Origin: Heptranchias perlo
Taxonomy: Eukaryota
Direction of reading: 5' to 3'
Assembly: GCF_035084215.1 (NCBI RefSeq)
Contig: NC_090340.1
Span: 3,534,001 to 3,598,000 of the forward strand
Length of the DNA: 64,000 nt
The position numbers and the translations under genes are program-made. Under the pieces are notes generated by a model, which worked only from the letters and a program-made list of their open reading frames with translations, did no database searches and was not told where the DNA came from. This document shows positions 2,657 to 45,489 of this stretch, one piece after another. How positions within the stretch are numbered: the first letter of the stretch is position 1; the number at the start of each line of letters is the position of its first letter.

Positions 2657-2692
2657 CTACAGCAATCTATCTTCAACCGTCTCTTTCATGGT
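2657..2692 (-). CDS. Gene A exon 6, terminal cytoplasmic exon TMKETVEDRLL-stop
   Basis: attttacag|ACC acceptor resembles the gene B last exon (atttcacag|ACC); TAG at 2657-2659. Confidence 0.6.
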   Translation of the reverse strand, partial: TMKETVEDRLL

Positions 2693-5600
2693 CTGTAAAA
2701 TTGAAGCGTTTTCCGGTTAGCTGGATTAGTCAGCAGAGTGATGCATGGAACAGAACGCGGTCGGCTGTAACTAAATTAATGTTTCAACGAATATGTCATT
2801 TGAATAAAGAATATATCATAGCAGTATATCATTATTGAAATTTCACAACTTTTATTTCTGACCGCATCGTGCTTAACATTTTCCGCCTGATCAGAGCGTC
2901 TTACAATCACCAAGAAGTGTAACAAAACACCATTACATTCCTTCGAATTCTAAAAAATCCTAGAAGCTGAAAAACAGTATAATTTTCTTCTACACTCAGT
3001 GAACAACTGCATTGTGCCCAGAATGTGTGCCTCAGACATGGGTTCAATGACACACAAAGAGGTGTTTTATCAATATTGAGAAGGAGATGCCGAAGTGAAG
3101 TCGTGCATTGGGACCTGGAGTTTGAGTTCAGCCTGTACTGATAGATGACTCTCCTTTTCTTGACCCATCTCGATCTCACTCATCATGTGGTGGTTTTCAG
3201 CGTCAAATATACAATTTATTAAAAATCGACATGGAAGAATTATTAACCTCACTCAGAGAAGCCAGCGATGAGTAGGCCGGAGAGTAGGGATGATACTTAG
3301 GGGCCAGATGTCTTGTTTTTCATCAGGTGGAGCTTTAGGCATTTTATTGAAGCCTAATAAATTAATCAGTTAATCAGTCTGTATCTAACTCTACTGCACC
3401 AGACCTCGGGGTGTTAAATGGGGGAGTGTCGACGAAGGTCTACTCTGCTCTGGGAGTGTTTGATGGGACAGTGTAGAATGAAATTTGTTCCCAATCCACC
3501 CCCTGCTGTAAATGACTGGAAATGTTTAAAGCCGGAAATGGGACTGATGGGGATTTATTGATTTTGTACAGTGGCCCCTCGTGGACATGAGCATAAACAT
3601 TTACCAACAATCTAAATGTGAAAAATACGGGATAATCGCATAAGGCAGAAATTTCAAATATGTTCAGTTTTAGATCACATTCTTTTAAGACCTCAAGCAT
3701 TTTCGAAAATGTGCGAGAGAAACATACCCGTTCTTCGAAGTGTTGAGATTCCTCTTCTTTTCTGCGTGCGCCTGGTGAAATACAACATTTATCTTTCAAC
3801 ATATATCAGGAAGTTAGGCACTGAGAGCAGGGGAATCCGACTTAGTCTCAGCCAATAAGACCTTCAGGATCGCAGCTCATGACAAGTTTTGAAAATTTAA
3901 TCGCAACGCCGCCTTCCTTTGAACAATTTTGAATTAAAGTTCCCGCAATGCATTCGGCCCATAACACAAGGAATTACTGATTGCAATCTATGAAAAGCAC
4001 CGAAAAATGCAAATAGCTGTTCTCGTTAATCATTTATTTTAAGTTCATTTGAATGACACTTGGACAAATCATCAATGTCACATCGTGGAACCAATTAAAG
4101 CTGTTCAACAAATCAACAGAATTCGATTCCTGTAGCAGTTTTAACGCGTCTTAATCAGCCTGCCGTCATATTGTTCTCTTTTTTATTACAAATGTATCAC
4201 AATGAAACTGCAGATTTGGCTCCTTACCTTTACAGTTACTGAGTTGGCAACTCTTCCCAATGACGGCGACGAGGGCTAGAAGTATCAATGCACCCACTGT
4301 ACATCCAGAAATCAGTAGGTAATGGGGGATGTGTTCATTGCCTATAATAATAATAATGTGTTAGTTGCACGATTTATGTAATCAGTGCCTCCATAATGAG
4401 ACTGTTAACTCGGGCAAGCTGATTTAGTTCTAGATATCATATATACGTTTATTGATTCTGGTTTTCCCTTCAGCAGAATCCGGCATGTGAATTGTCTGCA
4501 TTACAGGGGCAAAACATAATTTTTCGATTTTCATTGACACGACAATGATGAACTTTGAAGCTAAGAAGACTGTGGCGCAAATTGCAGCCGCATTATTCAT
4601 CCTTGGTTGATGCCTCCCGGAGACCATCAGCTGAAACAGGAATTGACTTGGATCGGCAGGGTATCAATAAAGGGAAATATTTAATTAAATGAGAAAAATA
4701 CATTCTACGTATTTCTCTCTTTATTAAAATACCAGGAATTGAATCTGATGAACATTAATATAATTCAGTTCATAATTATAATCTTTATAGATTAAAATCT
4801 TTTCCTCTGATGGAGAAATTTTACTTTTTTTCATCTGTTATACAAATCCGCAAATAGCAACAATCTTTAAATGAAAACTCTTTAAATTTATTGTCTGCCA
4901 AAAACAAAACAGACTGATGGCAAATAATCAGATTTATAGTTAACGATGGCTGCCAATATCTGTAAAAATGTCAACATTTTACCTGGGTCAGAAGTGGAAT
5001 CAAAGTAAACCGCTACGGCTGGACTCTGCAGTGTGAGGTGAGACACCACACAGGTATGTATTACCCCGCTCTGGGCTGGCTGTGTCGCTTTAAAACTGCT
5101 GGAAGCTTCATACATTCCCTCCGAATTCAGCTTTATAATGGTGGTGATTCCTGTCACAATGTTGATGTCATTTTTATACCAAGTGAAGGTGAGAGGCTCT
5201 GGATAGAACACAGCCGTCGCACACACAAGAGTTCGAGCAGATGAGTTGGTTCCGAACACTTTGGGAGACAGACTCACGGGTTCTGGGGAAGCTGTGGAGC
5301 AAGGCAGGGAATACATTGTCTCGATGTGGCGAACTTAGTCCGATTTGGCGCTCAGTCTTCTTGAATGTAACAGTGTGACTCTAGGTCACAGGTACTGAAC
5401 TAAACCACTGACTGGAACTGACCTGGATCTGCAGGGTCGCCATTTGCTTGTTGGATGGTACTATGAATCAAATTCACACTTTGGATACTGAACAATTCGA
5501 ATTAAGCTACTTCGCATAACTTTCTAGACTAAAATGCGGACGATTCACAACCGTGTTGCAGTAACAGGAGAATGTATTTCAATGCGAGTAAACATTCAGG

Positions 5601-8600
5601 GCGTCGGTGCTTCGTGCTTAGTCCAGGGAAAGAATTAAATTTAGCTTTTAACTCAGCAGATGTTTGCTCTGCTTTCTTATTGGGCAGCGTTTAGTAAATA
5701 GGCAAAACGTATTCAGGTAATATTTGCTTGAGTTCTTTGAGGACATAACGTACAGGGTGGATAAAGGGGAACCAGTGGACGTACTGTATTTAGACTTCCA
5801 GAAGGCATTCGACAAGGTGCCACATAAAAGATTATTGCTCAAGATAAAGAATCAATGGATTGGGGGTAATATTCTGGTATGGGTGGAGGATTGGTTATCT
5901 AACAGGAAGCAGAGAGTTGGGATAAATGGTTCATTCTCAGACTGGCAACCAGTAGCCAGTGGTGTTCCGCAGGGGTCGGTGCTGGGTCCCCAACTCTTTA
6001 CAATCTATATTAACGATTTGGAGGAGGGGACCAAGTGTAACATATCAAAGTTTGCAGATGATACAAAGATGGGAGGGAAAGTAGAGAGTGAGGATGACAT
6101 TAAAAACCTACAAGGGGATACAGACAGTCTGGGTGAGTGGGCGGAGATTTGGTAGATGCAATACAATATTGGAAAATGTGAGGTGATGCACTTTGGCAGG
6201 AAAAATCAGAGAGCAAGTTATTATCTTAATGGCGAGAAACTGGAAAGTACTGCAGTAGAAAGGGATCTGGAGGTTCTAATGCAAGAAAATCAAAAAGTTA
6301 GTATGCAGGTGCAACAGGTGATCAAGAAGGCCAACGGAATGTTGGCGTTTATTGCTAGGGGGGCAGAATATAAAAACAGGGAGGTATTGCTGAAGTTATA
6401 TAAGGTATTGGTGAGACCACACCTGGAATACTGCATACAGTTTTGGTGTCCATACTTAAGAAAAGACATACTTACTCTCGAGGCAGCACAAAGAAGGTTC
6501 ACTCGGTTAATCCCGTGGATGAGGGGGTGGACATATGAGGAGAGGTTGAGTAGATTGGGACTCTACTCATTGGAGTTCAGATGAATGAGAGGCGATCTTA
6601 TTGAAACACATAAGATTGTGAAGCGGCTTGATTTGGTGGATGCGGTAAGGATGTTCCCAAGGATGGATGAAACTAGAACTAGGGGGCATAATCTTAGAAT
6701 AAGGGGCTGCTCTTTCAAAACTGAGATGAGGAGAAACTTCTTCACTCAGAGGATTGTAGGTCTGTGGAATTTGTTGCCCCAGGAAGCTGTGGAAGCTACA
6801 TTATTAAATAAATTAAAAACTGAAACAGACAGTTTCTAAGTAAAGGGAATAAGGAGCGGGCAGGAAATTGGATATGAAGCTGAGTTCGGATCGGTCAAGG
6901 CCCTGTGGGTGGCGGTGCGGGCCCAGGGGCTGAGTGGCCCGGTCCTGCTCCTACTTCTTGTGTTCTTTAGATTTGAGGTTAGGATCTGATCAGCCATGAT
7001 CTTATTGAATGGCGGAGCAGGCTCGAGGGGCCGATTGGCCTACTCCTGCTCCTATTTCTTATGTTCTCATGTTCTTAATATAATTTCAAACTGTTCGCGT
7101 TAAGAATTGCAAATTTGGAACAAAGGGGCAAAATCATTACCGCCCAGAGTAGTGGTACTTTAAAGCCGGGAGTATTGTCGGGACATTATAAATAGAGTCA
7201 CAGAGTACAAAAGCCAGGAAGTTATGCTAAACATTTACAAATCGATGGTGAGACTTCAGCTGGTGTATTGTGTCCAATTCGGGGCACCATATTTTACGAA
7301 GAATGCAAAGGGTGTCGACGCGTTTGCCAGAATTATACCACGGATGAGGGACTTCAATTCTGTGGAGAGACTGGAGAAGCTGGGATTGTTTTCCTTGCAG
7401 CCGAAAAGGTTAACGGGAGATGTAATTGATATGTGCAAGATGAGGTGGGGTTTTGCACGAGTAAATAAGGAACAACTGTTTCCTTTGACAGGAGGATCCG
7501 TAAACAAAGAACATGGATTGAAGACAATTGGCAAGAGAACTAGACGAAACAAGTGGAAATTTATTTTTTAAACAGCGAGATGTTATGTTCTGGAATGCAC
7601 TGAGTGAACCGGTGGTGAAAGCAGATTCAATAGTAACCTTCAAAAGAGATTGGATATATACATGAAATATAATTTTGTAGGGTTATGGTTGAAGGGCAGT
7701 TGAGAGTGACAAATGGGATAGCTCTTTCAAAGAGCCGACACATGCACGATGGGCGGAATGGCCGCTTTGTCTGCTGTAAGATTCTATGAAATTAGAGGCA
7801 GGTGCTTTCATTGTGACAAGAGTTTTTAAACACACAGGAACAAGTGCATAACACAGGAAGGATCTGAAAATACTCAATAGCCCAGCTGTCCATTCCATAA
7901 ATCTAATACCTCTGAAGCGTCCACTCCATCAAATATCGATTCAATTCTCCCGTAAAATTTTCAACATTATCTGCGCCCATCGGACAGTCCGTTTTGCATG
8001 TTTACCACCTTCTGCGATATATATATACATATATATATATATATAAATCAGTTAAATCTAATGTCTCTGCCCACCTTCCCTCCGAGAAGTTTCAGCCATT
8101 GTGCGTTGGCTGCCGTCTTTGTGGAAATTTCGAGCTAACTATCCATTCCCTTAATAGTCTTGAACACTTGAATAAAATCCTCCATGCGCCTTCTGTGCTC
8201 CAAAATAAACACGCCCGGGCTCCGCAATGTCTCATCGTTACACAGGTACCTTAAACTAGTCTTCAGTTTGGCTGCCTGGTTGAAAAAAGCGTCCAATGCT
8301 TGTTTGTCCTCAATGTCGTTTTTTGATAGAATTGTACACCGTATTCAAGGCGTCGGCGTACCAGTTCCCCAATAATTTTACAATGCTAACACCAGGGATG
8401 AATTCAGTAAATAAGCAAAACAACTGATGATACAACATATTTAACTCTAGATACTTAAAACACTTTAAATATACCTGTACTGTAACTATCCATATATAAA
8501 TATACTACAGATTGACTGTTAGCCATGTTTGAAAAAAAGAAAACTCATAACGTGGCCCTCTGCCTCTTTTCGTTATTGTGGAATGGCGGTAGTGCAATAC

Positions 8601-9150
8601 CAACGATCGCATTTTTCTGCAAGGTCGCTTACCGTGCACAACAAGCTTCGATTCGGTTCCATTTACGATCCGGTTTCCAGTGTATCTCACTCCACAGTAA
8701 TAGAATCCGGAGTCTGGGACACGAACATTCACGATCTGGAAGGAAGCCTCTCCGTTTTCCAAAGGGAAGAATCGTTTACTGCCGTCAGAACTTGGTTTTA
8801 ATAAGTGTTTGTCGCCAAGTCTCCACCAATAAACATTCACATCTGAATTATCATGGACGGAGCTCGTCAGGCATTTGAAAGTAACGTCTGCACCTGAAAT
8901 CACACTGGTGATTTCAGGGGTTTGGAAAACTTCAGCGGGAGCAACTATAAAACAGTCAAAAAACATTAATTTCAAAATAGGGATAAATCATATTTAGGCA
9001 CGGATAGATAAATTGATCGCCAAATAAAGAGATAGATGGATAAATAGATAGAGATAGTATATAGATCGAAGAAAGAAAGAATGGTCCATTATAGCAGAGA
9101 ATACCTTTGTAAATAATCCCTAGCACCCATATGTACTGACACACAAACAT
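2657..9150 (-). CDS. Gene A: non-rearranging VJ-C1-TM Ig-superfamily receptor (SIRP/NKp30-like), 6 exons, 286 aa, short tail without tyrosine motif
   Basis: Exons 9150-9105, 8944-8633, 5291-4983, 4341-4228, 3771-3728, 2692-2657 have AG/GT borders and matching phases (1,1,1,1,0). They sum to 861 nt (286 aa + stop). Exon sizes are mirrored by gene B. Confidence 0.85.
3728..3771 (-). CDS. Gene A exon 5, 44-bp cytoplasmic exon (GARRKEEESQHFEER)
   Basis: tttcaccag| ... CGG|gtatgt; same 44-bp length and phases as gene B exon 5. Confidence 0.8.
4228..4341 (-). CDS. Gene A exon 4, transmembrane (YLLISGCTVGALILLALVAVIG-KSCQLSNCK)
   Basis: Not in the ORF track; ttattatag| acceptor, hydrophobic helix, donor AAG|gtaagg; homologous to the gene B TM exon. 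Confidence 0.88.
4983..5291 (-). CDS. Gene A exon 3, C1-set Ig domain
   Basis: ctccacag| acceptor; LVCATAVFYPEPLTFTWYKN...YEASS...TCVVSH C1 motifs; donor G|gtaaaa; 309 bp. Confidence 0.92.
5722..7076 (+). mobile_element. 5'-truncated, relatively young CR1 LINE in gene A intron 2
   Basis: Three consecutive same-frame ORFs (GVPQGSVLGP, KFADDTK) separated by single stops; 3' UTR ends in an ATGTTCT-type repeat. Confidence 0.95.
7190..7790 (+). mobile_element. CR1 3' fragment
   Basis: YKSMVRLQLVYCVQF...ERLEKLGLFSL; ends in gattctatga. Confidence 0.85.
8017..8046. repeat. (TA)n microsatellite
   Basis: Direct reading; one interruption. Confidence 0.9.
8633..8944 (-). CDS. Gene A exon 2, V-set Ig domain with germline J-like G strand
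   Basis: ttttatag| acceptor; VTFKC...VYWW...DSGFYYC...NGTESKLVVH; donor G|gtaagc. Confidence 0.92.
9003..9066. repeat. Degenerate (GATA)n tract in gene A intron 1
   Basis: gatagata...gatagatggataaatagatagagatag. Confidence 0.6.
9105..9150 (-). CDS. Gene A exon 1, signal peptide MFVCQYIWVLGIIYK(V)
   Basis: ATG at 9150, hydrophobic stretch, phase-1 donor AAG|gtattc; homologous to the gene B leader (VLQCISVLGIIFT). Confidence 0.75.
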
Positions 9151-9635
9151 TGTACAATGGATATTGATCAGCCAATGAACCACGGCTCTAATGGTTTGTA
9201 AGTATCTGTAGATAATGCGATCTGATTTGTGATGTGATGAGGTGTCGTATCATGTGCCTAAACCTGCTTTCGATAAGCTATTTTAAGTGGCGAGATGTGA
9301 ATGCAAATGTCATTTAATATGCATGAGAACCTGACCTCAACAGAAACTGTAATCTGAAGTTAAACCAAAGCCTCTCTGGTTGGCCTGTATGCGATTTATC
9401 TCACTGACGTATGATTAAGCAAGTAACAGGTTCTCGACACGTTGATGAAATTCACTGACTTCCTAGAAGCAGTTCATATTATACAGAAGATGTCGAAAGG
9501 AAGGGATGTGGGTGGTCGGATTGCCAATAAGCGAAAGTCGGAAAGCTTCAGCAAGAAGACAATTTGTGCTGAGTCTGGTCCAAGTGACCCTGCCCCAAAC
9601 CCGTCAGTATTTCCTCCCTCGGTCTGTATTATCCA

Positions 9636-10006
9636 TGCGGACACGATGGGCCGAATGGCCTCCTTCCGTGCTTTAACCTTTCTATGATTCTATGATTATG
9701 TGGTCAAGAACCAGACGACATAGATTTAAGACGAATGGCAAAAGATCCAGAGGTGACATGAGGAAAATGTTTTTTACACAGCGAGTGGTTATGATCTGGA
9801 ACGCACTACCAGAGGGGGTGGTGGAGGCAGATTCAATCGTGGCTTTTAAAAGGGAACTGGGTAATTACTTGAAAGGAAAATAAATGCCGAGGCACGGGGA
9901 TAGGGCGGGAGAGTGGGACTCGCTGGACTGGTCTTGCATCGAGCCGGCACAGAGTCGATGGGCCGAATGGCCTTCTTTCGTGCTGTAACCTTTCTACAAT
10001 TCTATG
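9636..10006 (+). mobile_element. Two tandem CR1 3' ends
   Basis: gatgggccgaatggcct...ctatgattct tail present twice; FFTQRVVMIWNALPE. Confidence 0.85.
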
Positions 10007-10213
10007 ACCCGATGCGGGACGTATTCGGAGCGGTAAAACGATGAAGCTGCAGATTTCCAAAGGCTGCGGCCAGGTAAAGGAGGACATCAGAGCATGGATT
10101 CTCCTCTTCGGGTCGCAGTTCCTTCAGGATGGTATTTCCACCTGTCCGTCCGAATCCAACCCGATCCTGATCCAATTTTTTCTGGTCGCGCTTCATCTGA
10201 TGCACAGGGCAAC

Positions 10214-10390
10214 TCCCATCATGCACTCGTGGAGGTATTGCTGGCTCAGGTCAAAGCGAGAAGGGATTGACTGTTGAGACTTTAGGTTAGGCAGCCTCAA
10301 AGGAGGGTGGTTCAGGCTGTTTTCAGGGAGGCTGCTGAGGATGTCTGTGCAACGTCACTACCAAAGTACTGCAGGAAGAGATTAAATGTA
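10214..10390 (+). mobile_element. Decayed Myb/SANT-like ORF of a PIF/Harbinger transposon
   Basis: Translates ALVEVLLAQVKARRD*L...EAAEDVCA...CRKRLN, similar to the Myb-like ORF at about 51540. Confidence 0.55.
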
Positions 10391-11484
10391 CCACTGAAAC
10401 TTCACTGACCACCTTGCCTCAAACTCTTTCTGATGATCTGAGTGTTGGGAAAAGTAACGCATGCATAGGCAAACCTCTTCAAGTACTCCAGCGCCACTTA
10501 AACTGAGAATCACTCTGTAAACTCACATAAGCTGTCACATTGGTTCTGTGCGTCTTCAGGGACATTTCCTTTAAAGACCTAATTCCCCAGCAACTCTCAT
10601 CATCACATGAGTGATGTATCCACTCAAATTGGTGAAAACAACATCGCTACCCCTGACCATTTAACAATATCTTCTCCTACCACAAAACGAAAGGGAAGTA
10701 CACAAACCCCAAGGGGGTATTCGGTCTGTCATGACACTGACACTTACGTGATACATAGTGTCATAAAATAGGTTAATAAAAGAGCATCACGGGTTAATTA
10801 GTTTGAGGGGCTGCAGTGAGATAGAAAGAGAAAGAGGGTGCAGCACGTGCCAGAAATATCTCTTTGCAAAACAGACAGCTTGAGCAAGATAAAATACAAT
10901 CGCAGATTTAAATGTAGCTGGTGTAGAAGTAATGAACAGTATTCCTCTAAAATTGAGCTTGGACACTAGAATCTTAGATGAATCTTATATCACAAGACTT
11001 TAGGAGTGTATCAGTTAAAGTATTTAAGGGTGGGCAGGTGATGTTACTATGGAACAGACGAGTCTAAGTATAATGGAAAATTAGCTGGAGAAACAAGAGC
11101 TACAAGATGAAATAACCCTGACAACGAGATAAGAGATGGGGCCTTATATCTAACGATTTCACCCTGCGATTAACTAAATGATGCACTGCCGAGCTGGACA
11201 AATCAGGTTCGAGTCAGTTTTCAGACAAATGGATAACAATTGGTGCTAACGTTAGATCATATCTTATGACCAAAAGTGTGTGTATTATAGTAAAAGTCAA
11301 AATGTGGAACGCAATTTATCTTGTTGGGGGGGGCGGGGGGGGGGAGGTGGTGTGAGTGGAGGGGGCTGAGGACTTCTGATCAAGAACGGCCTGGTAAAAA
11401 TTATAGGGAGTTGCTTGCTTATAATCACCTGTGCGTTCAATAAATCTTGAAAGATGAGTTGTCTCTTGATAAGTTGATAAGAGG

Positions 11485-12292
11485 CCATAGTGACCAGAGT
11501 TCAAGTGAGTGGGCAAAACTTTGGTAGATGTATTTCAGTGTGAGGAATTTTGAAGTTTGCACTTTGAATTAAGAAAGATAGATCAAAGTATGTTATAAAT
11601 GGTGAGAAGTTGGGAACTGTGCAGGCACAGAGAGATTTATGGGTCCAAGTACAGGAATCGTGAAAAGCTCGTGGACAGGTAGAAAAATAATTTAAAAGGC
11701 TAATGGAATGTTCGATTCATCTCAAGGGGGCTGGAATACAAGTGGGTGAAATTTATCCAACAGTTACATAACGCTCTGGTTCGACCTGGGCGCCACATCT
11801 CAGGAAGGGTAGAATGGCCATGGAGGGGGTGCAGTGCAGATTCATCAGAATGATACCAGGGCTAAAGGGATTAAATTATAAGGACAGGTTGCACAGACTC
11901 GGCTTATATTCCCTTGAGTATAGAAGGTTAAGTGAGGATTTAATGGAAGTTATTAAGATGATTAAATTATTTCATAAGGAAGCTAGAGAAAAACGATTTC
12001 CTTTGGTCGTAGAGTCCTGAACAAGGGGGCATAATCTTAAAATTAGATCTAGACCGTCCTTGGGCGATGTCAGGACACTTTTCTGCACACACTCTGTCCG
12101 TCAAAAGGCTGTTGAAATTAGGTCAACTGGAAATTTCAAAACTGAGGTTGATAGATTTTTGTTCGGTGAGGTTATTAAGATCTATGAAACTAAGGAGGGT
12201 AAATGGATTTAAGATACAGATCGACCATGATTTAATTGAAAGGCGGAACTTTCTCAAGGAGCTGAATGACCTCCGCCTGTTCTTATGTTTCT
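11485..12292 (+). mobile_element. CR1 3' fragment
   Basis: MEGVQCRFIRMIPGLKGLNYKDRLHRLGLYSLE; CR1 tail. Confidence 0.88.
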
Positions 12293-29416: not shown

Positions 29417-29584
29417 TTAATTGACTTTCCGTTCCGTGTAAATAACGTCTGATCTTTGGTTTTTCATCCGTAGCTGAGCGTATTCCGTGTTCTTATTCTT
29501 ATGAATAGGCTTTGCAGTCTTCTTGGAGCCAGTCATAACTAGTGAAGCATAGGTCAGCTTGTTCTCAGGTGCCCTTTGCTTGGT
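29417..29584 (-). pseudogene. Gene B exon 7, terminal tail exon with ITIM LTYASL and TEYAQL
   Basis: atttcacag| then TKQRAPENKLTYASLVMTGSKKTAKPIHKNKNTEYAQLRMKNQRSDVIYTERKVN-TAA. Confidence 0.85.
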
Positions 29585-29792
29585 CTGTGAAATCAATGGT
29601 TGGACATCTCATGAGTTCGATAATTTACCTGTATGTAGGTTAGTGTTAATCATTAGAATAGCCGGAACCTCGCAGAATCCGCGTTAAATACAAAAGATTA
29701 GCAAAGTTCTATTAACGCTAGTTCGTGCACTACCCCGCATGCCCGTTAATTACAGGTAACTCGTGTCTCTTTGATCGACTCCTCGGCCGTAC

Positions 29793-29899
29793 CTGGGCAT
29801 ATACTGTCCTCTATTCCTCAAATAATGCTTTGATCCTGGGCCTTTCCAGGAATTAGTCAAATTTACTGCAGCATAAGGCGCCATCAGAACTTCTGTTAC
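29793..29899 (-). pseudogene. Gene B exon 6, tail exon with APYAAV and, in a shifted frame, RTVYAQ
   Basis: ccatgcag| ... CAG|gtacgg; 107 bp, not a multiple of 3; TAG at 29811-29813 in the TVYAQ frame. Confidence 0.75.
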
Positions 29900-30431: not shown

Positions 30432-30492
30432 ATATATATATATATATATTTACTATGTTTATGTCAATTGATATATATATATATATATATAT
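30432..30492. repeat. Two (TA)n tracts
   Basis: Direct reading. Confidence 0.85.
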
Positions 30493-34100: not shown

Positions 34101-34610
34101 ATGTTATACCCTTCAATTTGATTTTGAACCTATAGTTCATTTAATTTATTCCTTATACTCCGTGCATTTGTATATAGAGCTCTTAGTTGGGCCACACACC
34201 CTAGCCTGACCTTCAGCTTTGATGCTCGGGTAATCGCCTTACGCCTTCTAGTTTTCACTTCATCTGTAGTGTCTAACTACACTTTCTTTCTGTTGCTCTA
34301 CGCTTTTCCCTTTCAATTGTTCTTGAACAACTGTTTCTACTATTTGTTTTGTAAATTTTCCCTGGGTCTTCCCTCTCTTGCTGCTCTCAACTTTACTCCC
34401 TTCTGACTCACCGCTAAGGTTCGAGTAAGGACGGCAACTTCCTTCCCTGAAGGACATTCGTGAACCAATGGGATTTAACGCTATCGAACAGCTTCATGGT
34501 CACTTTTACTGATACCAACTTTTTATTTCCAGATTTTTAGAAACTGAATTCTAATTCTCAAACTGCCCTGGTGGAATTTGAACACACGTTTTGTAGATTT
34601 ACTCCAGAGC
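31130..34610 (-). mobile_element. SINE split by a CR1 insertion (pieces at about 31130-31280 and 34420-34610)
   Basis: tRNA-like B box near 34570-34585; its tail (gggcaataaatg...gatgcccacatc) is shared with the LINE end at 63315-63360. Confidence 0.6.
31281..34420 (-). mobile_element. CR1 with nearly complete decayed ORF2 (endonuclease + RT)
   Basis: GRGGGVAL, MGDFN, KSPGPD, FQKAFDKVP, WNSLP; atgttcct tail. Confidence 0.95.
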
Positions 34611-34991
34611 TAATTAATGGGGATAACATTATGAACTGCGGTAGCAGCATTTTTCAACAAACGTGTCAGTTGTTTCCAGGAGGCAAAAGCAGATTTTTTT
34701 TATTATTCGCCATAGCTGATGGTAAGTTTTAAGCGATATGTTGTTTTACAATCCATAGGTGACTGTTCTATATCGGCTGCCACTGACCTACTGATACAGA
34801 CATTAAAAAATCTAGTGTTTCCTTGTATGTGTGTGTGTGTGTTGCGTCAGTGCTGATACTCTGCACTAGTTTTGTGAGAATCTTTACAGTGTTAGACTAA
34901 AACGGGGCAAATTATTGCATTAAATAGATTACAACTCTCTTATCTAAATATTTATAAAATAAATATATTAGGATGAATTGTGGAAACTTAC

Positions 34992-35035
34992 CGGCTGTTC
35001 GCGATGGCCTGATCTTTCAGCATCGTTCTGAGGTC
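34992..35035 (-). pseudogene. Gene B exon 5, 44-bp cytoplasmic exon (GPQNDAERSGHREQP)
   Basis: cattaccag| ... CCG|gtaagt; length and phases identical to gene A exon 5. Confidence 0.8.
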
Positions 35036-35181
35036 CTGGTAATGAATGAAGTTCAAGATTTTACATTGGAGCATTTTAACAACGTAGAAGGACACTTCCG
35101 TGTAGACTCAATGTAAAGTATAAAATGATCTTGATATCACATTTTACGGAATTGCTTGGATTCTGAACTGTGTTTGGCAAT

Positions 35182-35448
35182 AGACAGTTTCCTAGAAGTA
35201 AAGGGAATTAGGGGTTATGGGGAGCGGGCAGGAAATTGGACATGAAGCTGAGTTCGGATCGGTCAATGCCCTGTGGGTGGCGGAGAGGGCCCAGGGGCTA
35301 TGTGGCCGGGTCCTGCTCCGACTTTTTGTGTTCTTTAGATTTGTGGTTGGGATCAGATCAGCCATGATCTTATTGAATGGCGGAGCAGGCTCGAGGGGCC
35401 GATTGGCCTACTCCTGCTCCAATTTCTTATGTTCTTATGTTCTTATGT
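35182..35448 (+). mobile_element. Short CR1 3' UTR copy, same subfamily as 5722-7076
   Basis: Closely matches 6828-7076. Confidence 0.9.
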
Positions 35449-36429
35449 AATAGGGCTGGCATTGTTCAGCTGACCACGGGACATTGCGTGCAGCAGGAGG
35501 CTGATTGGAAACTCGCTGGATCACTACCCGCAATTCCATGTTCACTGTCCTGAATGGGACAGAAAATCGCACGCAATGTAAGGTGATTTTATAAAAAAGC
35601 TCCCGCTGAATGCCAGCCTCCAACGGCGGTTGTGGGACCTTGGGAAATTACGCCCCATTTTACACAACACTTTCGAAATCCGAATCTACCGCTACACCGG
35701 TAGTGCTGAAATTTTATTCAAAATATTAGTTGTTGCAATTAGTATAAATATAGCAGACTGGAATGACTCTCAAGTATCCCTCATATTTTAAACCCAAGGT
35801 CAAGCTGTTATATTCAACAATCGATCCAGTACCTGTGACACAATGTAAATGTACTTTCAACCGTTCAGTTACAATTTACTAACTTTTTCTCTCGATGTAT
35901 CATGGTATCATAGCAGGTACAGCATAGGAGGATGCCTTTCGGCCCATCCTGCCTGTGCCGGCTCTTTGAAAGAGCTATCCAATTACTCCCATTCCCCTGC
36001 ACCATAACCCTATATACTTATCTATTCAAGGATTTTTCTAATTCCCTTTTGACAGATATTATTGAATCTGCTTCCACCACTCTTTCGTTGCACATAATTA
36101 CAACTCGCCGTGTAAAATAATGTCTCCACATGTCGCCTATTGCTCTTTTGCCATCACCTTAAATCTGTGTCCTTTGGTAACCGACCCTTCTGCCACTGGA
36201 AACAGATTCTCCTTATTAATTCTGTCAAAATTGTTTATTATCTTGAACGCATCTATCCAATCTCCTAGTAACCTTCTCTGTTGTAAGGAGAACAATCCCA
36301 GCTTCGCCAGTCCCCCTACATAACTGAAGTCCCTCATCCCTGGAACCATTCTAGTAAATCTCTTCTGCACTCTCCCTAAGGCCTGACCTCCTTCCTAAAG
36401 TGCGGTGCCCATAATTGAACACAATTCTC

Positions 36430-37028
36430 CAGCTGAGGCCATAAAAGTGTTTTATGCCTTTGTTACCTCTAGACTTGACAATTCCAATGTTCCACTGGCC
36501 GTGCTCCCATCTTTCACCCTCCATAAATTTGAGCATATCCAAACCTCTGCTGCTCGTATCCTAAGTCGCAACAAGTTCCGTTCACCCATCGCCCCTACAT
36601 TGGCTCCCGGTCTGAGAAAGCCTCGAAATTAAAATTCTCATCCTTGTTTTCAAATCCCTCCATGGCTTCGCCCATCCCTAACTCTGTAACCACCTCCAGC
36701 CCCATAAAGCTTTGAGATCACTGTGCTCCTCCAATTCTTGCCTCTTGCGCATCCCAGATTTTAATTGCTCCAACATTGGCGACCGTGCCTTCAGCTGCTT
36801 AGGCCCTAAACTCTGGAATTCCATCCCTAAACCTCTCCGACTGTTATCCTTTCTATCCTCCTTTATGCCGCTCCTTAAAACCTACCTCTTTGATCAAGCT
36901 TTTGGTTACTGTTCTAATATCCGCTTATGTGACTCGGTGTCAAATGTTGTTTGATATTCGCGCCGATGAAGCGCCTTGGGACATTTTACGACATGAAAGG
37001 CGCTATATAAATGCAAGTTGTTGTTGCT
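36430..37028 (+). mobile_element. L2 LINE 3' end
   Basis: AFVTSRLDNSN...QTSAARIL...GDRAFSCLGPKLWNSIP; tail ggcgctatataaatgcaagttgttgttg. Confidence 0.88.
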
Positions 37029-38774
37029 TAGCATGAGGTCCTTGCTTTTGTACTCGATGCCTCTATTAATAAAGCCCAGGATCCCATATGTTTTTTTAAC
37101 AGCCTGGTCAAGTTGTCCTACCACCTTCAAAGCTTTGTGCATAATATGCAACACCAGGTCTCTCTTTTCTTGCACCCCTTCAAAATTGGGCTCTTTTGTT
37201 TCGATTGCCTTTCCTCATTCTTCCTACCAAAATGCATGACTTCACACTTCAATGTGTTAAATGTCATCAGCCATGTGTCTGCCCAGTCTCTCTATGTCTT
37301 CCTGAAGTCTGTTACTATCGTCCACATTTTTTGCTACATTTCCGAGTTTTGTGCCATCTGCAAACTTTGTAGGTATATCCAGTATACCCAAGTCCAGTTC
37401 ATTAATATATATCAGAGGGAGCAGTAGTCCTAACACTGACCCTTGGGGCACACCACTGTATACTTTCCTCCAGCCTGAAAAACAACCATTCACGAAATGC
37501 TCTCTGCTTTATGTCCCCTGGCCAATTTTGCATCCACGCTGCCACCGTCCCTTGAATCCTATGGGTTTTAATTTTGCTAACAAGTCTATTATGTGGTATT
37601 TTATCAAATGCCTTTTGAAAGTTCATATACACAACATCAACCGCACTTCACTCATTAACCCCTTCCGTTACTTCATCAAAGAACTCAATCAAGTTAGTTA
37701 AACACGATTTTCCTTCAACAAATCCGTGTTGACTTTCTTTTATTAACCCATACTTTTCCAAGTGCCAATTATTGTCTCGAAAAGCTTCCCCACCACCGAC
37801 GTTAAGCTGACTAATTGCCAGCTTTATCCATCTCCCTTTTTTGTGCAGTGGTGTCAGATCTGCAATCCTCCAGTCCCCCAGCACCGCCCAATATCTAAGG
37901 TTGATTGTAATATTGTGGCCAGAGCCTCCACAATTTCCCCCTTGCTTCCCTCAGTAACCTAGGATGCATCACATCTGGACCAGATGACTTTTCGAATTTG
38001 AGTAGTGCAAATCTTTTAAGTACCTCCTCATTATCTATTCTTATCCTACGCAATATCACTACCACCTCCCCCTTTACTGCTACAATGGCAGCATCGTCTT
38101 CTCTCGTGAAGACAGATGTGAATTATTCATTTAGCACCTCAGCTATGCCCTCTGCCTCCAAAAGAAGATGTACATTTTTTCCCTAATCGGTCCCATCCTT
38201 CCTTTGACTGCCCCTTTACTGTTTATATGTTGAGAAAAGACCCTTGGGTTCCCTTTTATCTTGGCCACTAATCTATTCGCATAATCTATCTTTGTCCCTC
38301 ATATTCCTTTCTTTTAGATCTCCTCCATACGTTCTGTGTTGAGCCTTGTTCTCCATTGTAGTATGAATGTTACATTCGTCATAAGCCTCATTTTCCTGTT
38401 TCATTTTAATCTCTATATCTTTATTCCTCCAGGGAGTTCAAACTTTGGATGCCCTTCCTTACCCCCTCGTGGGGATGTGTCTATTATGTATCCGAACCAA
38501 ATCCTCCTTGAATGCCTCCCATTGTTCAATTACTGTTTTGTCTACCAATTGTTGATTCCAATCCACCTGGGCATGATCTCTTTTTAACTCACTGAAATGT
38601 GCCCTCCTCCAGTTAAGCATTTGCATATTTGATTATTCCTTCTCCTTTTCCATCTTCTAAACCTAACGATATTATGATCACTATTCCCCAAATGCTCTCC
38701 CACTGAAACATGCTCCACCTGCCCCACTTCATTCTCCAGAACTTGATTCAGCAGTGTTTCCCCTTCCTTTCATT

Positions 38775-39635
38775 TGGCATGGCCCTCGACAGTGTCCGTC
38801 CCATTTCCTGCACTTCCTCACTCGTCCCGCTTCTTCCCAGAACCATGATAGAGTCCACCTTGTCCTCACCTTCCACCCCACCAGCCTCCACATTCAACGT
38901 ATCAACCTCCGCCATTTTCGCCACCTCCACCGCAATGCCACCACCAAACACATCCTCCCCTCCGCTCTGCTTTCAGGAGTCCATAGGGAACGCTCCCTCC
39001 GAGACACCCTGGTCCACTCTTCCATCACCCCCAACATCAGCTTTCCTCCCCATTGCACCTTCCCGTGCGAGTACTGGAGATGCAACACGTGCCCTTTCAC
39101 CTCATCCCTACCCACTGTTCAGGGCCCCAAACATTCCTTCTAGATGAAAAACAGATTTACTTGTACTTCATTCAATTTAGATACTGAATTCACAGCTCCC
39201 AATGCGTATCCTCTAAACTGGGGAGACCAAACGCAGTTTGATTGATCGCTTTGCTGAACAGCAACGCTCAGTCCGCAAGATTGACCCTGACTTGCTGGTC
39301 GTTTGTCATTTTAATTCCACCTCCCATTTCCACTCTGACCTCTCTGATCGCCACCTCTTATATTGTTCCAATGAAGGTCAATGGAAGCTCGAGGAGCAGC
39401 ACCTCATCCTTCGATTCGGCACTTTACAACCTTCCGGACTCAACATTAATTTCAATAACTTCAGATCTTAACCACTGCTCCCATTTTTTTCGGAGACCTT
39501 TCCCTGTCTCTGTACTTAGTTAAAAACTGTTTAATCTGTAACTTGTACCAGTTCTGATGAAGTGCTATCGAACTCTCTTTCTCCACAAATGCAGCCTGAC
39601 TTGCTGAGTATTTCCAGCGTCTTCTGCTTTTGTTA
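38775..39635 (+). mobile_element. Penelope-like element, GIY-YIG endonuclease region
   Basis: LVLTFHPTSL...RSLRDTLVHS...RCNTCP...GETKRSLIDRFAEQ...CHFN...TLQPSGLN. Confidence 0.85.
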
Positions 39636-40644
39636 TAAATGCATTCTGTCTTTGACCCCCGCAACTACATCATTGCTTTCCAGTGCAGTAATAGTTTATT
39701 TGATCAATACTGCCACCCCCGCCTTCCTTTCTACCCTACCTTTCCTGAATACATTGTAGCCAAGAATATCAATACCCAAATCCTCCCCTTCTTTGAGCCA
39801 GGTCTCTGTTATTGCCACTATGTCATAGCACCATTTGGCGACTTCAGTCTGCAGCTCTCCATCCTTATTTGCCATGGTACATGCGTTTACACAAATGCAC
39901 TCTAAACTTATCTTAAATTGCCTGGCATTTGCCCCCTATCTGATCCCTACTGATGCAGAATTATTCTTTACCCTCGTGCTACTTGTCTCTTCCAATCCTC
40001 TGTGGACCTTGTTTGCCGTCTCACATGTTTCGTCTTGGTGCTCATCCTCCTTTAGTGTAAACCCTACCCCACAGCAAGTTAACATCCCCGCAAGTACATT
40101 GGTCCCAGCTCTGTTGAGGTGCAACACATTCATCTCGAACAGATCCCATCTGCCCCAGAAATAGTCCCAATGCCCCAGGAATCTGAAGGGCCCCCTCCGG
40201 CACCATTGCTCCAGCCACTCTTTAACCTGTCTTATCCTACTAGGCTTATACCAACTAGAGTATAGAACTGGGAGTAATCCCGGGGACTCCAGTACTCCCA
40301 GGGGACTCCTGCACTGCCTGCCTGTTCTTACCAGTCTGTCTGTCCCACTTCCTCTCCGCCTCAATTCTCTGTAGCTGCGAGGTAACAATCTTCTGAAACG
40401 TGCTGTCCATGAAACTCTCAGCTTACCCTATTCATTGTAGTGACGCCAGCCGCGCCTCAAGCTCAGAAACTCTGAGCACAAGCTCGAGCAGATGGCGGCA
40501 TTTCCTGCACATGTGGTTTTCCAGGACACACCAAGTGTTCTGGAGATCCCACATGGGACAGGATGTGCATGCGACAGGCCCCTGCTGTCCTGCCATGTTA
40601 ACTCCAGTTATTTAAACTGTTTGTTTACATTTAAGCCAATTTAA

Positions 40645-42900
40645 TATAGAAAATAGGAGCAAGAGTAGGCCATTCGGCCCTTTGGGCCTGCTCCCCCATT
40701 CAATATGATCATGGCTGATCGTCTAACTCAGTGCTCTGTTCCCGCTTTATGCCCATATCCCTTGATCCCTTCAGCATTAAGAAATGTGTCTATCTCCTTC
40801 TTGAATACATCTAATGACATGGCCTCCACTACCTTCTGTGGTAGAGAATTCCATAGGTTCACCACCCTCTGAGTGAAGAAATGTCTCCTCATCTTGGTTC
40901 TAAATGATATAGTCTCTATCCTGACACTGTGACCCCTGATTTTGAGCTCCACAGCCATCGGGAACATCCTCCCTGCATCTAGTCTGTCTAGTCCTGTTAG
41001 AATTTTATATCTTTCGATGAGGTCACCTCTCATTCTTCTAAACTCCAGTGAATATATGCCTAGTCGACCAATCTATCCTCATACGTCACTCCTGCCATCC
41101 CAGGAATCAGTCTGGTAAACCTTCGTGGCACTCCCTCCATGGCAAGGACATTCTTCTTCAGATAAGGGGACCAAAACTGCACACAACACTCCAGATGTGG
41201 TCTCACTAAGGCCCTGTATAACTGCAGTAAGACATCCCTTCTCCTGTACTCAAATCCTCTTGCAATGAAGGCCAACATACCATTCGCCATCCGAACTGCT
41301 TGCTGCACCTGAATGCTGGTTTTCAGCGACTGGTATACAAGGACACCCAGATCTCGTTGCACCTCCCCTTTTCCCAATCTATCACAATTCAGCTAATAAT
41401 CTGCCTTTCTGTTTTTTGCAACCAAAGTGGATAACCTCACATTTCTCCATGTTATACTGCATCTGCCATGTTCTTGCCCACTCACGCAACTTGTCTAAAT
41501 CACATTGGAGCTTCTTTGCATCCTCCTCAAAGCTCACATTCCACCCCAGCTTTGTGTCGTCTGCAAACTTGGCAATGTTACATTTAGTTCCCTCATTTTA
41601 GTCATTGATATATATTGTGAATAGCTGGGGCCCAAGCACTGATCCCTGCGGTACCCCACTAGTCACTGCCTGCCACCCGGAAAAAAAACCTGTCTGTCGA
41701 TTAATTCTCAATCCATGCCAGTATATTCTCCCCAATCCCATGTGCTTTAATTTTGCACACTAACCTCTTGTGTGGGAACTGATCAAAAGCCTTCTGAAAA
41801 TCAAATACACCACATCCACTGGTTCTGCCCAACCTATTCCACTAGTTACATTCTCAAAAAACTCCAGTAGATTTGTTGAGCATGATTTCCCTTTCATAAA
41901 CCCATGCTGACTTTGTCCAATCCCGTTAATGCCCACCAAATGTTCTGTTATCACATCTTTTATAATATAGTCTAGCTTTTTCCCCACTACTGATGTTAGG
42001 CTAACCAGTCTGTAATTCCCTGTTTTTTCTCTCCCTCCTTTTTTAAGTAGTGGGGTTACATTTGCCACCCTCCAATCTGTAGGAACACTTCCAGAGTCTA
42101 TAGAATTTTGGAAGATGATCACCAATGCATCCACTATTTTCAGTTCAACTTCCTTTAGTACTCTGGGATATAGATTATCAGGCCCTGGGGATTTGTCAGC
42201 CTTTAGCCCCATTAATTTCCTGAGCACTTTTTTTTACTAATACTCGTTTCCTTCAGTTCCTCCCTCTCAGGAGACCCTTAGTTCCCTAACATTTCTGGCA
42301 GGTTATTTGAATCCTCCTTTGTGAAAGTATGTGTTCAATTGTTCTGCCATTTCTTTATTGCCCGTTATAATTTCCCCCATTTCTGATTGTAAGGGACCGA
42401 CGTTTGTCTTCACTAATCTTTTTAGTGGGAATTTACCCTTTATCTAACACTAAAACACTAACCACTAAAAAACAAAAACCAACCATTAAGGCACTAACCA
42501 CAACAACAATAACCACTAAAAACACTAACCAATTAACTAATTAATGGCTGACTTGCACGCGACTCTCCTCTTTGTCTTGTGACGTCACTTTTTGACTTTC
42601 TCGATTTTTGATTTCTTGCGCCGCTCCCTTCACGCTCCGCTTAATCATAGTTGTTTTTAATTAAGTTTTATAAGTTGATAGATTAGTTTACAGTTCCTTG
42701 ATTTAAATCGCGTAGCACCTCCTTCCCCCTTTGCACCTAATTCCCACACTCACCAAATTCCCAATTGAAAGTCGTCAGTTTGTCAGCAATTAATTTACCT
42801 TACTATTTACCAGTGAATTCCCACACTCTACAAATTCCTGATTGAAGGTCCTCACTCGGTTAGCAATCCACTCATTTACAGGTTCACTCTCTGTCTTTGC
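40645..42900 (-). mobile_element. CR1 LINE with internal deletion; probable 5' UTR remnant at 42430-42900
   Basis: RT ORFs at 40728-42227; low-complexity region and about 77-bp tandem duplication at 42739-42870. Confidence 0.8.
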
Positions 42901-42986
42901 CAACCTCTGTAGGCAAGCTTAGGACGTTCTCGCTCTCTCTTTGAAAGTTGTGTTCACTTTGTTAAAAAGACTAAATGATTTCTTAA

Positions 42987-43097
42987 CTTTATTTTTCTTT
43001 GAGAGACATCGCTTTCCAATGATGAGAGCCAACGCCAGGAATATCAATCCGCCCGCTGCACATGCTGAAATCAGCAAGTAACCGGTGAACTCACCAC
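42987..43097 (-). pseudogene. Gene B exon 4, transmembrane (YLLISACAAGGLIFLALALIIG-KRCLSKKNK), mutated donor
   Basis: cttgtag| acceptor; ends AAAG|ttaaga where gene A has AAAG|gtaagg. Confidence 0.85.
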
Positions 43098-43702
43098 CTA
43101 CAAGATTTAGGTGAAATGTACAAATATGAAGCAGTGCACTGTTCAATTGAACAATATCATGACTTAAAAGGTCAGCAACATTTTAATCAATTGTTGCTAT
43201 TTTAGTAATGTTATATTTAAGGTATAGTTTTATGAAACAAAATACAAAATGCAGAGCTATGTTTTTTTTCATGCGTGAGGAACACATTACTGTTATATTA
43301 TCTTGCTTGAAACTCAAATCTGATTGAAATAAGTTTGCGATATAAATGTGATAATGATTAATTTGTTACTTGTTATGACGGCTAACAGTAGTTGCTAAAA
43401 TTGCAGCATGCTGCAGATTTCGAGCAAGGTTTGAAGAATGCAGCAGGCAGCGGTCCCGCCTCTCGGCGTAACGACTTGGAACTGCAGGACGCGAGTTACT
43501 GCTCGATGTTGTCCCAGGCGTCAGTTCCATGTCTCGACCGTGACTCCCACTGAGGCAAGGGGTGCCGAACAACGTTGGCTTTGGAGCTGAACACCTGGCA
43601 GAAATCCATGGATAATTATATTTGCTCTTAGCAAACAAATGATGGGGGAGGCATCTCAGAAAATAGTTTTACTTGCAGGATAACTGAGATCTGCAATCTT
43701 AC

Positions 43703-44011
43703 CTGTTGGGTAGAGGAAAATGTGAGTGGCTATGGCAGGAGTTTCGATGGTATTGTGAGACACCAGGCAGGTATACACAGTCCCGGTTCGGACAGGCTGC
43801 GTCTCTTCCAAACGGCTGGAAGCTTCATATAGTCCATCGGTTTTGAGTTGAATAATGCTATTTATCCCTGGTGTAGTTTTAGTCAAATTTTTATACCAAG
43901 TGAAGGTGATATTCTCCGGGTAAAACGGATTTGTCGCACACACAACAGTTAGAGACGAAGATGAATCCTTTCCAGGTTCCCGAGAGATAATTTTCAGTGG
44001 AGTTGGCGGAA
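43703..44011 (-). pseudogene. Gene B exon 3, C1-set Ig domain
   Basis: tttttctag| acceptor; VVCATNPFYPENITFTWYKN...YTCLVSH; donor G|gtaaga; 309 bp as in gene A. Confidence 0.92.
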
Positions 44012-44946
44012 CTAGAAAAATGGAGGAAAATAACGTTACTGGGGCATCATTCAAGGTTATCAACATGTCGTTTTGTTTCGGCCCATTACTGACAGCACAA
44101 AGAGGGAGTTGTTCACTGTGTGTTATCCGTAGCGACATCGTTAACGGCATCTTCATAAATGTTAACTTTATATCGGGGGTAATTTAAACTTTTATCGTAG
44201 GGCGAAAAACGGGTCCAACTGATGGGAAAAATATCGAGCGGGTTCTAAAAAGGGCGGCCGATTCACTATCGCCTGTTTTGCGCTCACCGCCGAAGCCCAT
44301 ATTCACTCTCAAGTATAATAACTGACAAGAAAGTACAATTGAACAAACGCGAGGGGCTTTGGCACACAAGTTCTGGGTGATATCTTATTTACTGAAGTGT
44401 GAAAGGATGATGAAAATGTGGAGTTTGTGGTCAGGTAAGTTTTCGGAATTTAACTGTTAATAACATCGGAGTTGCAAGCATCTTAACATATAGACCATTA
44501 AATTATAAACGCGGGAAGCTGAATTTTAATAGAAACTGTCAGCCCTCCTTAACCAACGCAAACAGAATAAACCATCATACAGGGTAAGATCCGTGCTTAC
44601 CGGGCAAATGCGCGCTCGTGTGCAATTCAGTCGAGACACATCCTTTAATCAGCAATTTTACCTTCACATGCTGAATGTGCACTTTGAGGTAAAATGATTA
44701 ACTCCTGTTAATGAATATTGGTGAAATATATATCATTCTACCGGATAATTGGAATGCATACAAAAATACAACGATTGTTATTTGAGTTTCAATGTGAATC
44801 CTTCAAAGCACAACCGACAAATGCGTATACAAGTGTGAAACAGTGTAGAATGTAAACAATACTAAAGCATGATTCATGCGCTGGATAAATCTGCTGTGAA
44901 ATGTTACGGTCAGGTTGATCTTCTTCGCCGCTATTGTTAAACTTAC

Positions 44947-45267
44947 CCCATACAGTTAAATTGGATCCCCTTCCGTTTCCAACTAGACTCCCTTGATGGG
45001 AGATAGTACAATAGTATACTCCCGAGTCCTTTACACTCACATTGAGTAGCTGAAGGAAGCCGCTGAACTAAGTTCTGAAGCCAGTTAATTTTCTGTCATC
45101 CAGCCCTGTACTTAGATATTCATTGTCACCCTGTTTCCACCAGTTCACCTTCACACGTGGGCCATATCGAAAGAAGGAAATCGAGCAATGAAAGGAGACG
45201 TTTGCACCCGTATTTCTGCTCACGGTTTCGGGGAGTTGAGTCAATTTGACCAAAGTTTCAGCGGAGC
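44947..45267 (-). pseudogene. Gene B exon 2, VJ-type V domain with in-frame stop
   Basis: ORFs 45068-45283 and 44789-45040 are one frame separated by TAG; VSFHC...NWW...DSGVYYC...[11 protein letters not shown]; donor G|gtaagt. Confidence 0.92.
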
Positions 45268-45434
45268 CTATCAGAAAAGACAATCACAATATAATTAGTG
45301 AGGTTATATTTCAGGACGAAAAGCTCGAGGTTAGTGGAATCAGGCAAACAGTCCAAAAGGCAATGATACATTTTATGTGAAGGAGAATCTATGCAATTAT
45401 GCGTTTTTGCGAGAATGCAGGATATAGAAGGAAC

Positions 45435-45489
45435 CTGTGAAAATGATCCCCAGAACAGAGATGCATTGGAGTACAACACTCGCCAACAT
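45435..45489 (-). pseudogene. Gene B exon 1, signal peptide MLASVVLQCISVLGIIFT(G)
   Basis: ATG at 45489, phase-1 donor CAG|gttcct; homologous to the gene A leader; 167-bp intron versus 160 bp in gene A. Confidence 0.75.

Follow-up and report, generated by a model that had tools for sequence, protein, structure and literature searches.

The 64-kb window examined here (contig NC_090340.1 of Heptranchias perlo, assembly GCF_035084215.1, positions 3,534,001 to 3,598,000) holds two neighbouring genes on its minus strand, an upstream one which we call copy A (45489-29417) and a downstream one, copy B (9150-2657). Both very probably belong to a large family in which cartilaginous fishes encode type-I membrane proteins without rearrangement, copy A being a dead member of an inhibitory lineage and copy B an intact, short-tailed one. 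A protein of this family would consist of a split leader, a V domain with a germline-encoded J-like G strand, one C1 domain, a transmembrane (TM) helix and the product of a juxtamembrane exon of 44 nucleotides (nt), with or without a tyrosine-bearing tail. The exons of both copies are compiled in Table 1.

The two genes are built alike. C1 exons of 309 nt and first tail exons of 44 nt occur in both copies, which confirms the equal exon sizes that a first-pass annotation of this DNA had reported for two paralogs on the same strand, the strand in question being the minus strand. Acceptors are AG throughout and donors are GT with the sole exception of that following the TM exon of copy A. Phase-1 introns follow the leader, V, C1 and TM exons, and the leader introns are short (167 and 160 nt). 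In a blastn comparison the C1 exons of copies A and B match to 71.5% over 200 nt; no blastn match is obtained between their V exons. To judge from their sequences, copies A and B are old paralogs. A tblastn search with twelve family proteins revealed no third copy in the window.

Both V exons end in a J-like G strand which directly precedes the GT donor and reads NGTESKLVV-H in copy B. Recombination signal sequences (RSS; heptamer-12/23-nonamer, at most three mismatches) are absent not only from the V exons and their surroundings, as noted earlier, but from the whole 64-kb window, with about 0.8 to 0.9 matches expected by chance. In addition, one RNA contig runs colinear with the V exon of copy B as it stands in the germline and is spliced straight to C1. 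Since the V exon is colinear with its J, no RSS is present and V is spliced to C1 in RNA, we conclude that these are germline-joined VJ, C1 and TM genes which need no rearrangement, just as the first-pass annotation had proposed. A rearranging V gene as found in immunoglobulin (Ig) or T-cell receptor (TCR) loci was considered as a candidate and ruled out on these same grounds.

The RNA data comprise four runs from one sample and were aligned to positions 2960-8959, the last coding exon of copy B (2657-2692) lying outside this interval. A contig of 913 nt joins 8946-8633, 5291-4982 and 4340-4228, which correspond to V, C1 and TM of copy B. Spliced V-C1-TM reads, on which the first-pass annotation had made its proposal depend, are hence present in the form of an RNA contig of a relative. 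All joints observed in RNA (8633>5291, 4982>4340, 4228>3771 and 4228>3987) show CT..AC on the plus strand, equivalent to GT..AG on the minus strand, and those linking V, C1 and TM sit precisely at the predicted sites; two runs contain joint 4228>3771, and X2 and X4 are the runs with joint 4228>3987. Because the contigs are free of introns and carry exact splice joints, the runs represent RNA. Identity to the window amounts to 98% within V, 93% within C1, 97% within TM and 93% over 2960-3757. The differences between the protein and the H. perlo model described below are distributed likewise, which indicates that the RNA originates from a relative or from a divergent allele. We would like to note that a V exon matching the relative's RNA at 98%, with the C1 exon at 93% like the 3' region, is the reverse of the fast-V, slow-C pattern usual among immune receptors.

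At the 3' end the main contig runs on unspliced past the 44-nt exon to at least about position 2924; in a minor form the TM exon is followed by an exon starting at 3987, and translation stops after four codons. If the donor at 3728 is left unused, the frame of the 44-nt exon of copy B stays open for 109 codons (3440-3802, minus strand; stop at 3442-3440) and contains the motifs SFYTV and PLYKI; its product may be an actual tail. Over 2960-3757 the relative's RNA is diverged by about 7%, the same as over the C1 exon of copy B, and the region of the read-through frame shows no sign of constraint. For a piece of about 33 nt located at 3445-3477, with loose ends on both sides, the summed contig depth exceeds 150,000 in all four runs. 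This piece probably stems from a repeat of very high abundance, perhaps from a SINE-like one (short interspersed nuclear element).

Copy B has the same six exons as the H. perlo protein XP_067853498.1 (P0162; 286 amino acids, 'natural cytotoxicity triggering receptor 3 ligand 1-like'), to which it is about 95% identical. Identical residues number 15 of 15 in the leader, 101 of 103 in V, 91 of 102 in C1, 36 of 37 in TM, 14 of 14 in the 44-nt exon and 10 of 11 in the last exon. Copy B is intact and the ortholog of XP_067853498.1; its own protein has no entry in the searched protein collection. The family had been expected to be probably poorly annotated, an expectation that fails insofar as close relatives have complete NCBI models, among them XP_067853498.1 with exactly the six exons of copy B; it is the names of these models that contradict each other. 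The tail of copy B, SCQLSNCK-G-ARRKEEESQHFEER-TMKETVEDRLL, is devoid of tyrosine, and in a MAFFT alignment its 'RLL-stop' is placed opposite 'KLTY' of those paralogs which bear an immunoreceptor tyrosine-based inhibitory motif (ITIM). Since there is neither a tyrosine in the tail nor a charged residue in the TM helix, the B lineage would be non-signalling. Reading copy B on through its TM donor (4166-4228, minus strand) yields 'NCK-GKEPNLQF..', and the model of the Mustelus asterias ortholog ends with 'NCN-GKEPTKLLIF..'. The first intron bases are hence conserved, and some species or isoforms may skip the donor.

Copy A, as its letters stand, is a pseudogene with four lesions in three exons. 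Within the V exon the TAG at 45070-45068 takes the place of a conserved lysine of Heterodontus P0170, Scyliorhinus P0020 and Amblyraja P0004 ('KTKFSGF'), copy A reading 'GFRT-stop-FSGFLQ' where the relatives read 'GFKTKFSGFLQ'. The donor behind the TM exon (a slash marks the splice border) is AAATAAAG/TTAAGA in copy A compared with CTGTAAAG/GTAAGG in copy B, that is, AAAG/TTAAGA versus AAAG/GTAAGG; no GT is close by except one located a base upstream, whose use would shift the frame. In the first ITIM exon the frame shifts after 'KGPGSKH', and the conserved 'QERTVYAQ' has become 'E-stop-RTVYAQ' by the TAG at 29813-29811. This exon thereby reads 'VTEVLMAPYAAVNLTNSWKGPGSKH' in frame 0 and then 'EE-stop-RTVYAQ' in frame 2, the ortholog showing 'ATVDVMAPYAALDMTKSRKDPRPKHQERTVYAQ'. 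The last exon of copy A matches Callorhinchus P0065 with E = 7e-11 and H. perlo P0038 with E = 2e-10. The H. perlo protein closest to copy A is XP_067854359.1 (74% identity in C1), the model of which lacks leader and V and starts within the intron preceding C1.

One might suppose that copy A works and that its stop results from an error of the assembly or represents a null allele that is rare. Leader, C1, TM, 44-nt and last exons are indeed all still open, and the C1 branch of copy A (0.17) is not longer than that of H. perlo P0183 (0.15). Yet four independent lesions across three exons would have to be explained away, and the absence of leader and V from the model of XP_067854359.1 is what is expected if V is unusable there too, so that a working copy A seems to us barely credible. 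With copy A being a pseudogene and copy B lacking any tyrosine, the pair of receptors with a SIRP-like signalling tail described in the first-pass annotation does not exist as such: because the tail of copy B has no tyrosine, a signalling tail is left in copy A alone, which is dead and whose tail is partly broken.

The family to which both genes belong is large. An exhaustive HMMER search using the C1 exon of copy B retrieves 139 representatives at E<=1e-10, and among the fetched database hits of at most 520 amino acids 79 are proteins with one V and one C1 domain. One chimaera, seven or more sharks and six or more rays or skates are represented by named members, which occur in Callorhinchus, Heterodontus, Heptranchias, Scyliorhinus, Mustelus, Chiloscyllium, Hemiscyllium, Amblyraja, Leucoraja, Pristis, Mobula, Hemitrygon and Hypanus. 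Their NCBI names comprise 'tyrosine-protein phosphatase non-receptor type substrate 1-like' (SIRP-alpha), 'signal-regulatory protein beta-1-like', 'immunoglobulin lambda-1 light chain-like', 'tapasin-related protein-like', 'NCR3 ligand 1-like', 'CD276 homolog' and 'class II beta chain-like'. The consensus of the G strand is NGTGSxLxV, its first glycine being invariant. Full-length tails, such as '..VAYDSLDF..ERTVYTQ/TKQ..KLTYASLDL..NTQYAEL', have the product of the 44-nt exon in common and alternate ITIM-like tyrosines (xxYAxLxL) with tyrosines resembling the immunoreceptor tyrosine-based switch motif (ITSM; TxYAQ or TEYAxL), A-lineage orthologs having about four of them. Four-tyrosine tails are found in the full-length orthologs and paralogs P0173, P0183, P0038 and P0024. 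No Pfam model matches the tail, save for a sub-threshold match of SIT.

In a tree of C1 domains copy B groups with P0162 (support 100/97) inside a clade of nine short-tailed shark and ray rows (100/96), and copy A falls, together with H. perlo XP_067854359.1, into a clade of 20 rows (100/99). The V tree shows the same groups, with copy A in the A-lineage V clade at a support of 97, and the chimaera genes form expansions of their own in the trees. The notion of a multigene family undergoing birth and death, put forward in the first-pass annotation, fits these results well, copy A being a case of death and both trees displaying old lineages as well as species-specific expansions. A chondrichthyan SIRP-like or VJ-C1-ITIM family is not described in the full-text literature searched, which missed several key papers.

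To place the ectodomain, full-length searches and folds were done with natural database proteins, the exons of the window being handled singly. By sequence, Heterodontus P0173 matches in the PDB UrIg2 (1.5e-18), SIRP-alpha (2wng, 5.8e-16), B7-H3 (CD276, 1.6e-15) and lambda chains (1e-14). A profile made from 28 family members finds UrIg2 at 6e-37, a value summed over three C domains, SIRP-alpha at 4e-31 and lambda chains at about 1e-24 to 1e-26. Its alignment with the lambda chain is a single one of 76 bits covering V, J ('vnGtGSkLvV' on 'VFGTGTKVTV') and C. At this level the ectodomain is about as distant from Ig lambda as from SIRP-alpha and UrIg2. The AlphaFold model of XP_067853498.1 has a mean pLDDT (predicted local distance difference test) of 84, with values mostly above 90 in the Ig blocks, and its best Foldseek matches are light chains and TCR beta. 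The antigen-receptor-like character ascribed to the ectodomain beforehand is thereby supported twice, by the end-to-end alignment of the family profile through V-J-C of Ig lambda and by the Foldseek ranking. Among representatives of PDB clusters B7-H6 comes first (Z 16.2 over 193 residues at 23% identity), with PD-L2, butyrophilins and B7-H3 ranking next; Z lies at 15-16 for B7-H6, PD-L2 and butyrophilins, and the same model gives Z values of 14.4 for a light chain, 13.6 for UrIg2 and 13.5 for SIRP-gamma. The fold search does not separate SIRP, B7, light-chain and UrIg2 relationships, and the modelled ectodomain is best taken as a generic V(J)-C1 unit.

These fold matches raise the question of whether the family, or at least its tail-less B lineage, belongs to the B7/butyrophilin group and is B7H6-like, acting not as a receptor but as a ligand shown to NKp30-type receptors. 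B7 molecules share the V plus C ectodomain and the TM helix and provide the nominally best two-domain fold matches, with B7-H6 leading the representatives ahead of PD-L2, butyrophilins and B7-H3. NCBI calls orthologs of copy B 'natural cytotoxicity triggering receptor 3 ligand 1-like' and uses 'CD276 homolog' for one paralog, and CD276 ranks third by sequence for P0173. Still, the Z values of B7, nectin, light chain, SIRP and UrIg2 all lie within about 2.5 of each other. Pfam assigns C1-set at 1e-9 to 1e-15 compared with 0.1 to 7e-4 for the C domains of CD80-like and BTN-like type (C2-set_2, C2-set_3). By profile, SIRP-alpha and Ig lambda rank high and no B7-family chain, CD276 included, is present among the 60 chains listed. 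Moreover, paralogs carry four-tyrosine tails in the style of SIRP-alpha, and to our knowledge neither a J-like G strand nor ITIM/ITSM tails are features of B7 molecules. On balance we consider a B7 identity unlikely.

Resemblance to SIRP extends over more parts of the protein. SIRPs have the same V domain with a J-like GxG G strand lacking the aromatic J residue, followed by a C1-set domain and TM, and SIRP is the most common NCBI name within the family. The tail of SIRP-alpha contains four tyrosines, ITIM-like motifs alternating with TxYAxx, an arrangement which recurs in full-length family members; the tail motifs of human SIRP-alpha served as the reference for this comparison. Lungfish 'SIRP-like' proteins were tried as a tail reference and dismissed since they have no ITIM tail. 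SIRP-gamma is a tail-less form existing beside inhibitory ones, as is the case in the family. On the other hand, no link to CD47 is known for the family, which furthermore is greatly expanded and spread along the chromosome. Full-length members would act as inhibitory receptors in the manner of SIRP-alpha: their V domain would bind a cell-surface ligand, Src-family kinases would phosphorylate the ITIM/ITSM tyrosines and the SH2 phosphatases SHP-1/2 would be recruited. The B lineage would resemble SIRP-gamma or a B7-type molecule and may serve as a non-signalling binder, a decoy or a partner chain.

The position of the J phenylalanine or tryptophan is occupied, in most family members, by the asparagine of an N-G-T sequon. 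In antigen receptors the aromatic J residue packs the VH-VL (V-V) interface. The N-G-T at this position hence argues, by sequence and known interface geometry, for a monomeric V domain as in SIRP and against an antigen-receptor V-V dimer.

UrIg and UrIg2 (PDB 9dmx) of cartilaginous fishes likewise combine a split leader, a single-exon VJ and C1-set domains without rearrangement. UrIg2 is the best PDB sequence match of both C1 exons and of P0173, this match being the sum of three weak domain matches of 11-26 bits each. UrIg2 has 9-11 C domains and UrIg several, and UrIg genes are reported from elasmobranchs only (PMC12227049). In contrast, the family has one C1 per gene and occurs in the chimaera too, and UrIg lacks an ITIM tail. 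Membership in UrIg/UrIg2 was ruled out given the single C1 exon between V and TM and a top PDB score that is summed over weak matches. The top summed matches of the C1 exon of copy B are P0001 (Carcharodon 'titin-like', 1105 amino acids, 10 C1 stretches) and P0005 (H. perlo, 980 amino acids), which may be UrIg2-type genes under uninformative names. Two papers, PMC12227049 and PMC10751288, the latter on the shark major histocompatibility complex (MHC), treat UrIg, NKp30 and PRARP as non-rearranging VJ genes and leave the present family unmentioned. According to PMC10751288, which cites Fu et al. (2019), PRARP are non-rearranging VJ-C genes of chicken and other non-mammals.

With Ig lambda and TCR chains the family shares the V-J-C1 layout; it differs in having neither RSS nor a separate J, in possessing TM and cytoplasmic tail and in the exchange of the J phenylalanine for asparagine. 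One could go further and see in these genes direct surviving relatives of the pre-RAG precursor, with a conserved A-then-B tandem encoding two pairing chains like PRARP A/B or TCR. The single-exon VJ, single C1, TM and short leader intron (160-167 nt) do reproduce the layout of an IgL or TCR chain, the profile aligns with lambda V-J-C in one stretch of 76 bits, light chains and TCR beta top the Foldseek matches, and the consecutive accessions of A-type XP_067906077-81 and B-type XP_067906082 in Heterodontus hint at the same adjacency. Accession order, however, is weak evidence of gene order, a membrane-proximal cysteine is missing, an N-glycosylation sequon takes the place of the J aromatic of the V-V interface, and with UrIg2 a pre-RAG candidate backed by linkage to Ig/TCR loci has already been published (PMC12227049). 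We judge such direct descent to be very unlikely; the link to a pre-RAG ancestor is one of architectural resemblance only, common to SIRP, UrIg/UrIg2 and others. A further idea is that A-type (four-tyrosine) and B-type (tail-less) genes form an old and conserved tandem whose V-C1 chains pair at the cell surface as a non-rearranging heterodimer, one signalling and one silent, and we hold it to be highly improbable. If true, the pre-RAG chain pair would have in the A/B heterodimer a living model nearer to it than are the UrIg genes with their multiple C domains.

Against our account of a SIRP-like family with a dead copy A and an intact copy B several points have to be set. The RNA contigs match at 93-98%, not 100%, and so demonstrate expression of an ortholog or allele in a relative, not of copy B itself. 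In these contigs the transcript continues unspliced beyond the 44-nt exon, so that the real C-terminus of copy B may differ from the NCBI model. Two hallmark residues of copy B are replaced: the second glycine of the J-like GxG, invariant in the alignment of 28 family proteins, is glutamate, and the tyrosine of the C1 YxC motif, present in at least 90% of family members, is histidine; the function of copy B may thus be decaying. The lesions of copy A were read from the letters of the assembly. Mammalian SIRPs contain two C1 domains, the family one (two in one skate model). The C1 tree does put the family beside lungfish 'SIRP-like' domains, at a support of only 85/87 and with few outgroups. 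B7-H6, PD-L2 and butyrophilins score slightly above SIRP-gamma and UrIg2 in the fold comparison, with Z values nearly tied. Membership in SIRP and orthology to tetrapod SIRPs must accordingly be regarded as unproven, the label drawing mainly on the tail and on sequence rank.

Table 1. Exons of copies A and B in the window (numbering of the 64-kb stretch).
Feature	Position	Strand	Remarks
Copy A leader exon	45435..45489	-	ATG at 45489; MLASVVLQCISVLGIIFT+G, phase 1; donor G/GT; 74% identity with catshark (Scyliorhinus) P0020 leader
Copy A V(J) exon	44947..45267	-	321 nt; in-frame TAG 45070-45068; V-set matched in halves (Pfam)
Copy A C1 exon	43703..44011	-	309 nt, intact; Pfam C1-set 3.5e-13
Copy A TM exon	42987..43097	-	111 nt; next two intron bases (42986-42985) are TT, GT in copy B
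Copy A 44-nt juxtamembrane exon	34992..35035	-	G-PQNDAERSGHREQP; top-scoring of the AG..44 nt..GT candidates in comparison with the family; 'GAQNDDESSDHCKQP' of H. perlo P0183 matches it
Copy A first ITIM exon	29793..29899	-	107 nt, 99 expected; 8-nt frameshifting insertion; TAG 29813-29811
Copy A last coding exon	29417..29584	-	intact; LTYASL, TEYAQL, VIYTER; stop 29419-29417
Copy B leader exon	9105..9150	-	MFVCQYIWVLGIIYK+G
Copy B V(J) exon	8633..8944	-	312 nt, intact; J-like NGTES; Pfam V-set 2.6e-10
Copy B C1 exon	4983..5291	-	309 nt, intact; Pfam C1-set 3.9e-9
Copy B TM exon	4228..4341	-	114 nt; helix without charged residue
Copy B 44-nt exon	3728..3771	-	G-ARRKEEESQHFEER
Copy B last coding exon	2657..2692	-	TMKETVEDRLL; stop TAG 2659-2657
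Copy B alternative exon after TM exon	3862..3987	-	D-C-N-Q-stop; 3' limit 3862 inferred from a GT only

Many decayed reverse-transcriptase open reading frames of long interspersed nuclear elements (LINEs) are present on both strands, namely at 5724-7600 (plus strand, within the V-C1 intron of copy B), over much of 10-42 kb and of 46-64 kb, and the 16-kb span of copy A consists mostly of LINE insertions. In the flanks (45.9-64 kb and 1-2.6 kb) only LINE/reverse-transcriptase remains were found; the window contains no flanking genes.

Genes that combine a single-exon VJ with C1 hold a central place in the debate over the gene that the RAG transposon entered, for which UrIg/UrIg2 are the current candidates (PMC12227049). 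In cartilaginous fishes, the chimaera among them, there is also a large family whose layout is exactly that of one V, one C1 and TM, a family which bears SIRP-style inhibitory tails in some lineages, is tail-less in others and goes under at least six contradictory automatic names. Though automatically annotated, this family is apparently unstudied, and the two genes of the window are new members of it. Taken alone they add little, one being dead and the other a tail-less ortholog of an annotated gene. What the window does provide are exon coordinates that are clean, a case of gene death and evidence that a short-tailed lineage has been kept in sharks as well as rays. Comparative immunologists would benefit if the family were properly described and named.

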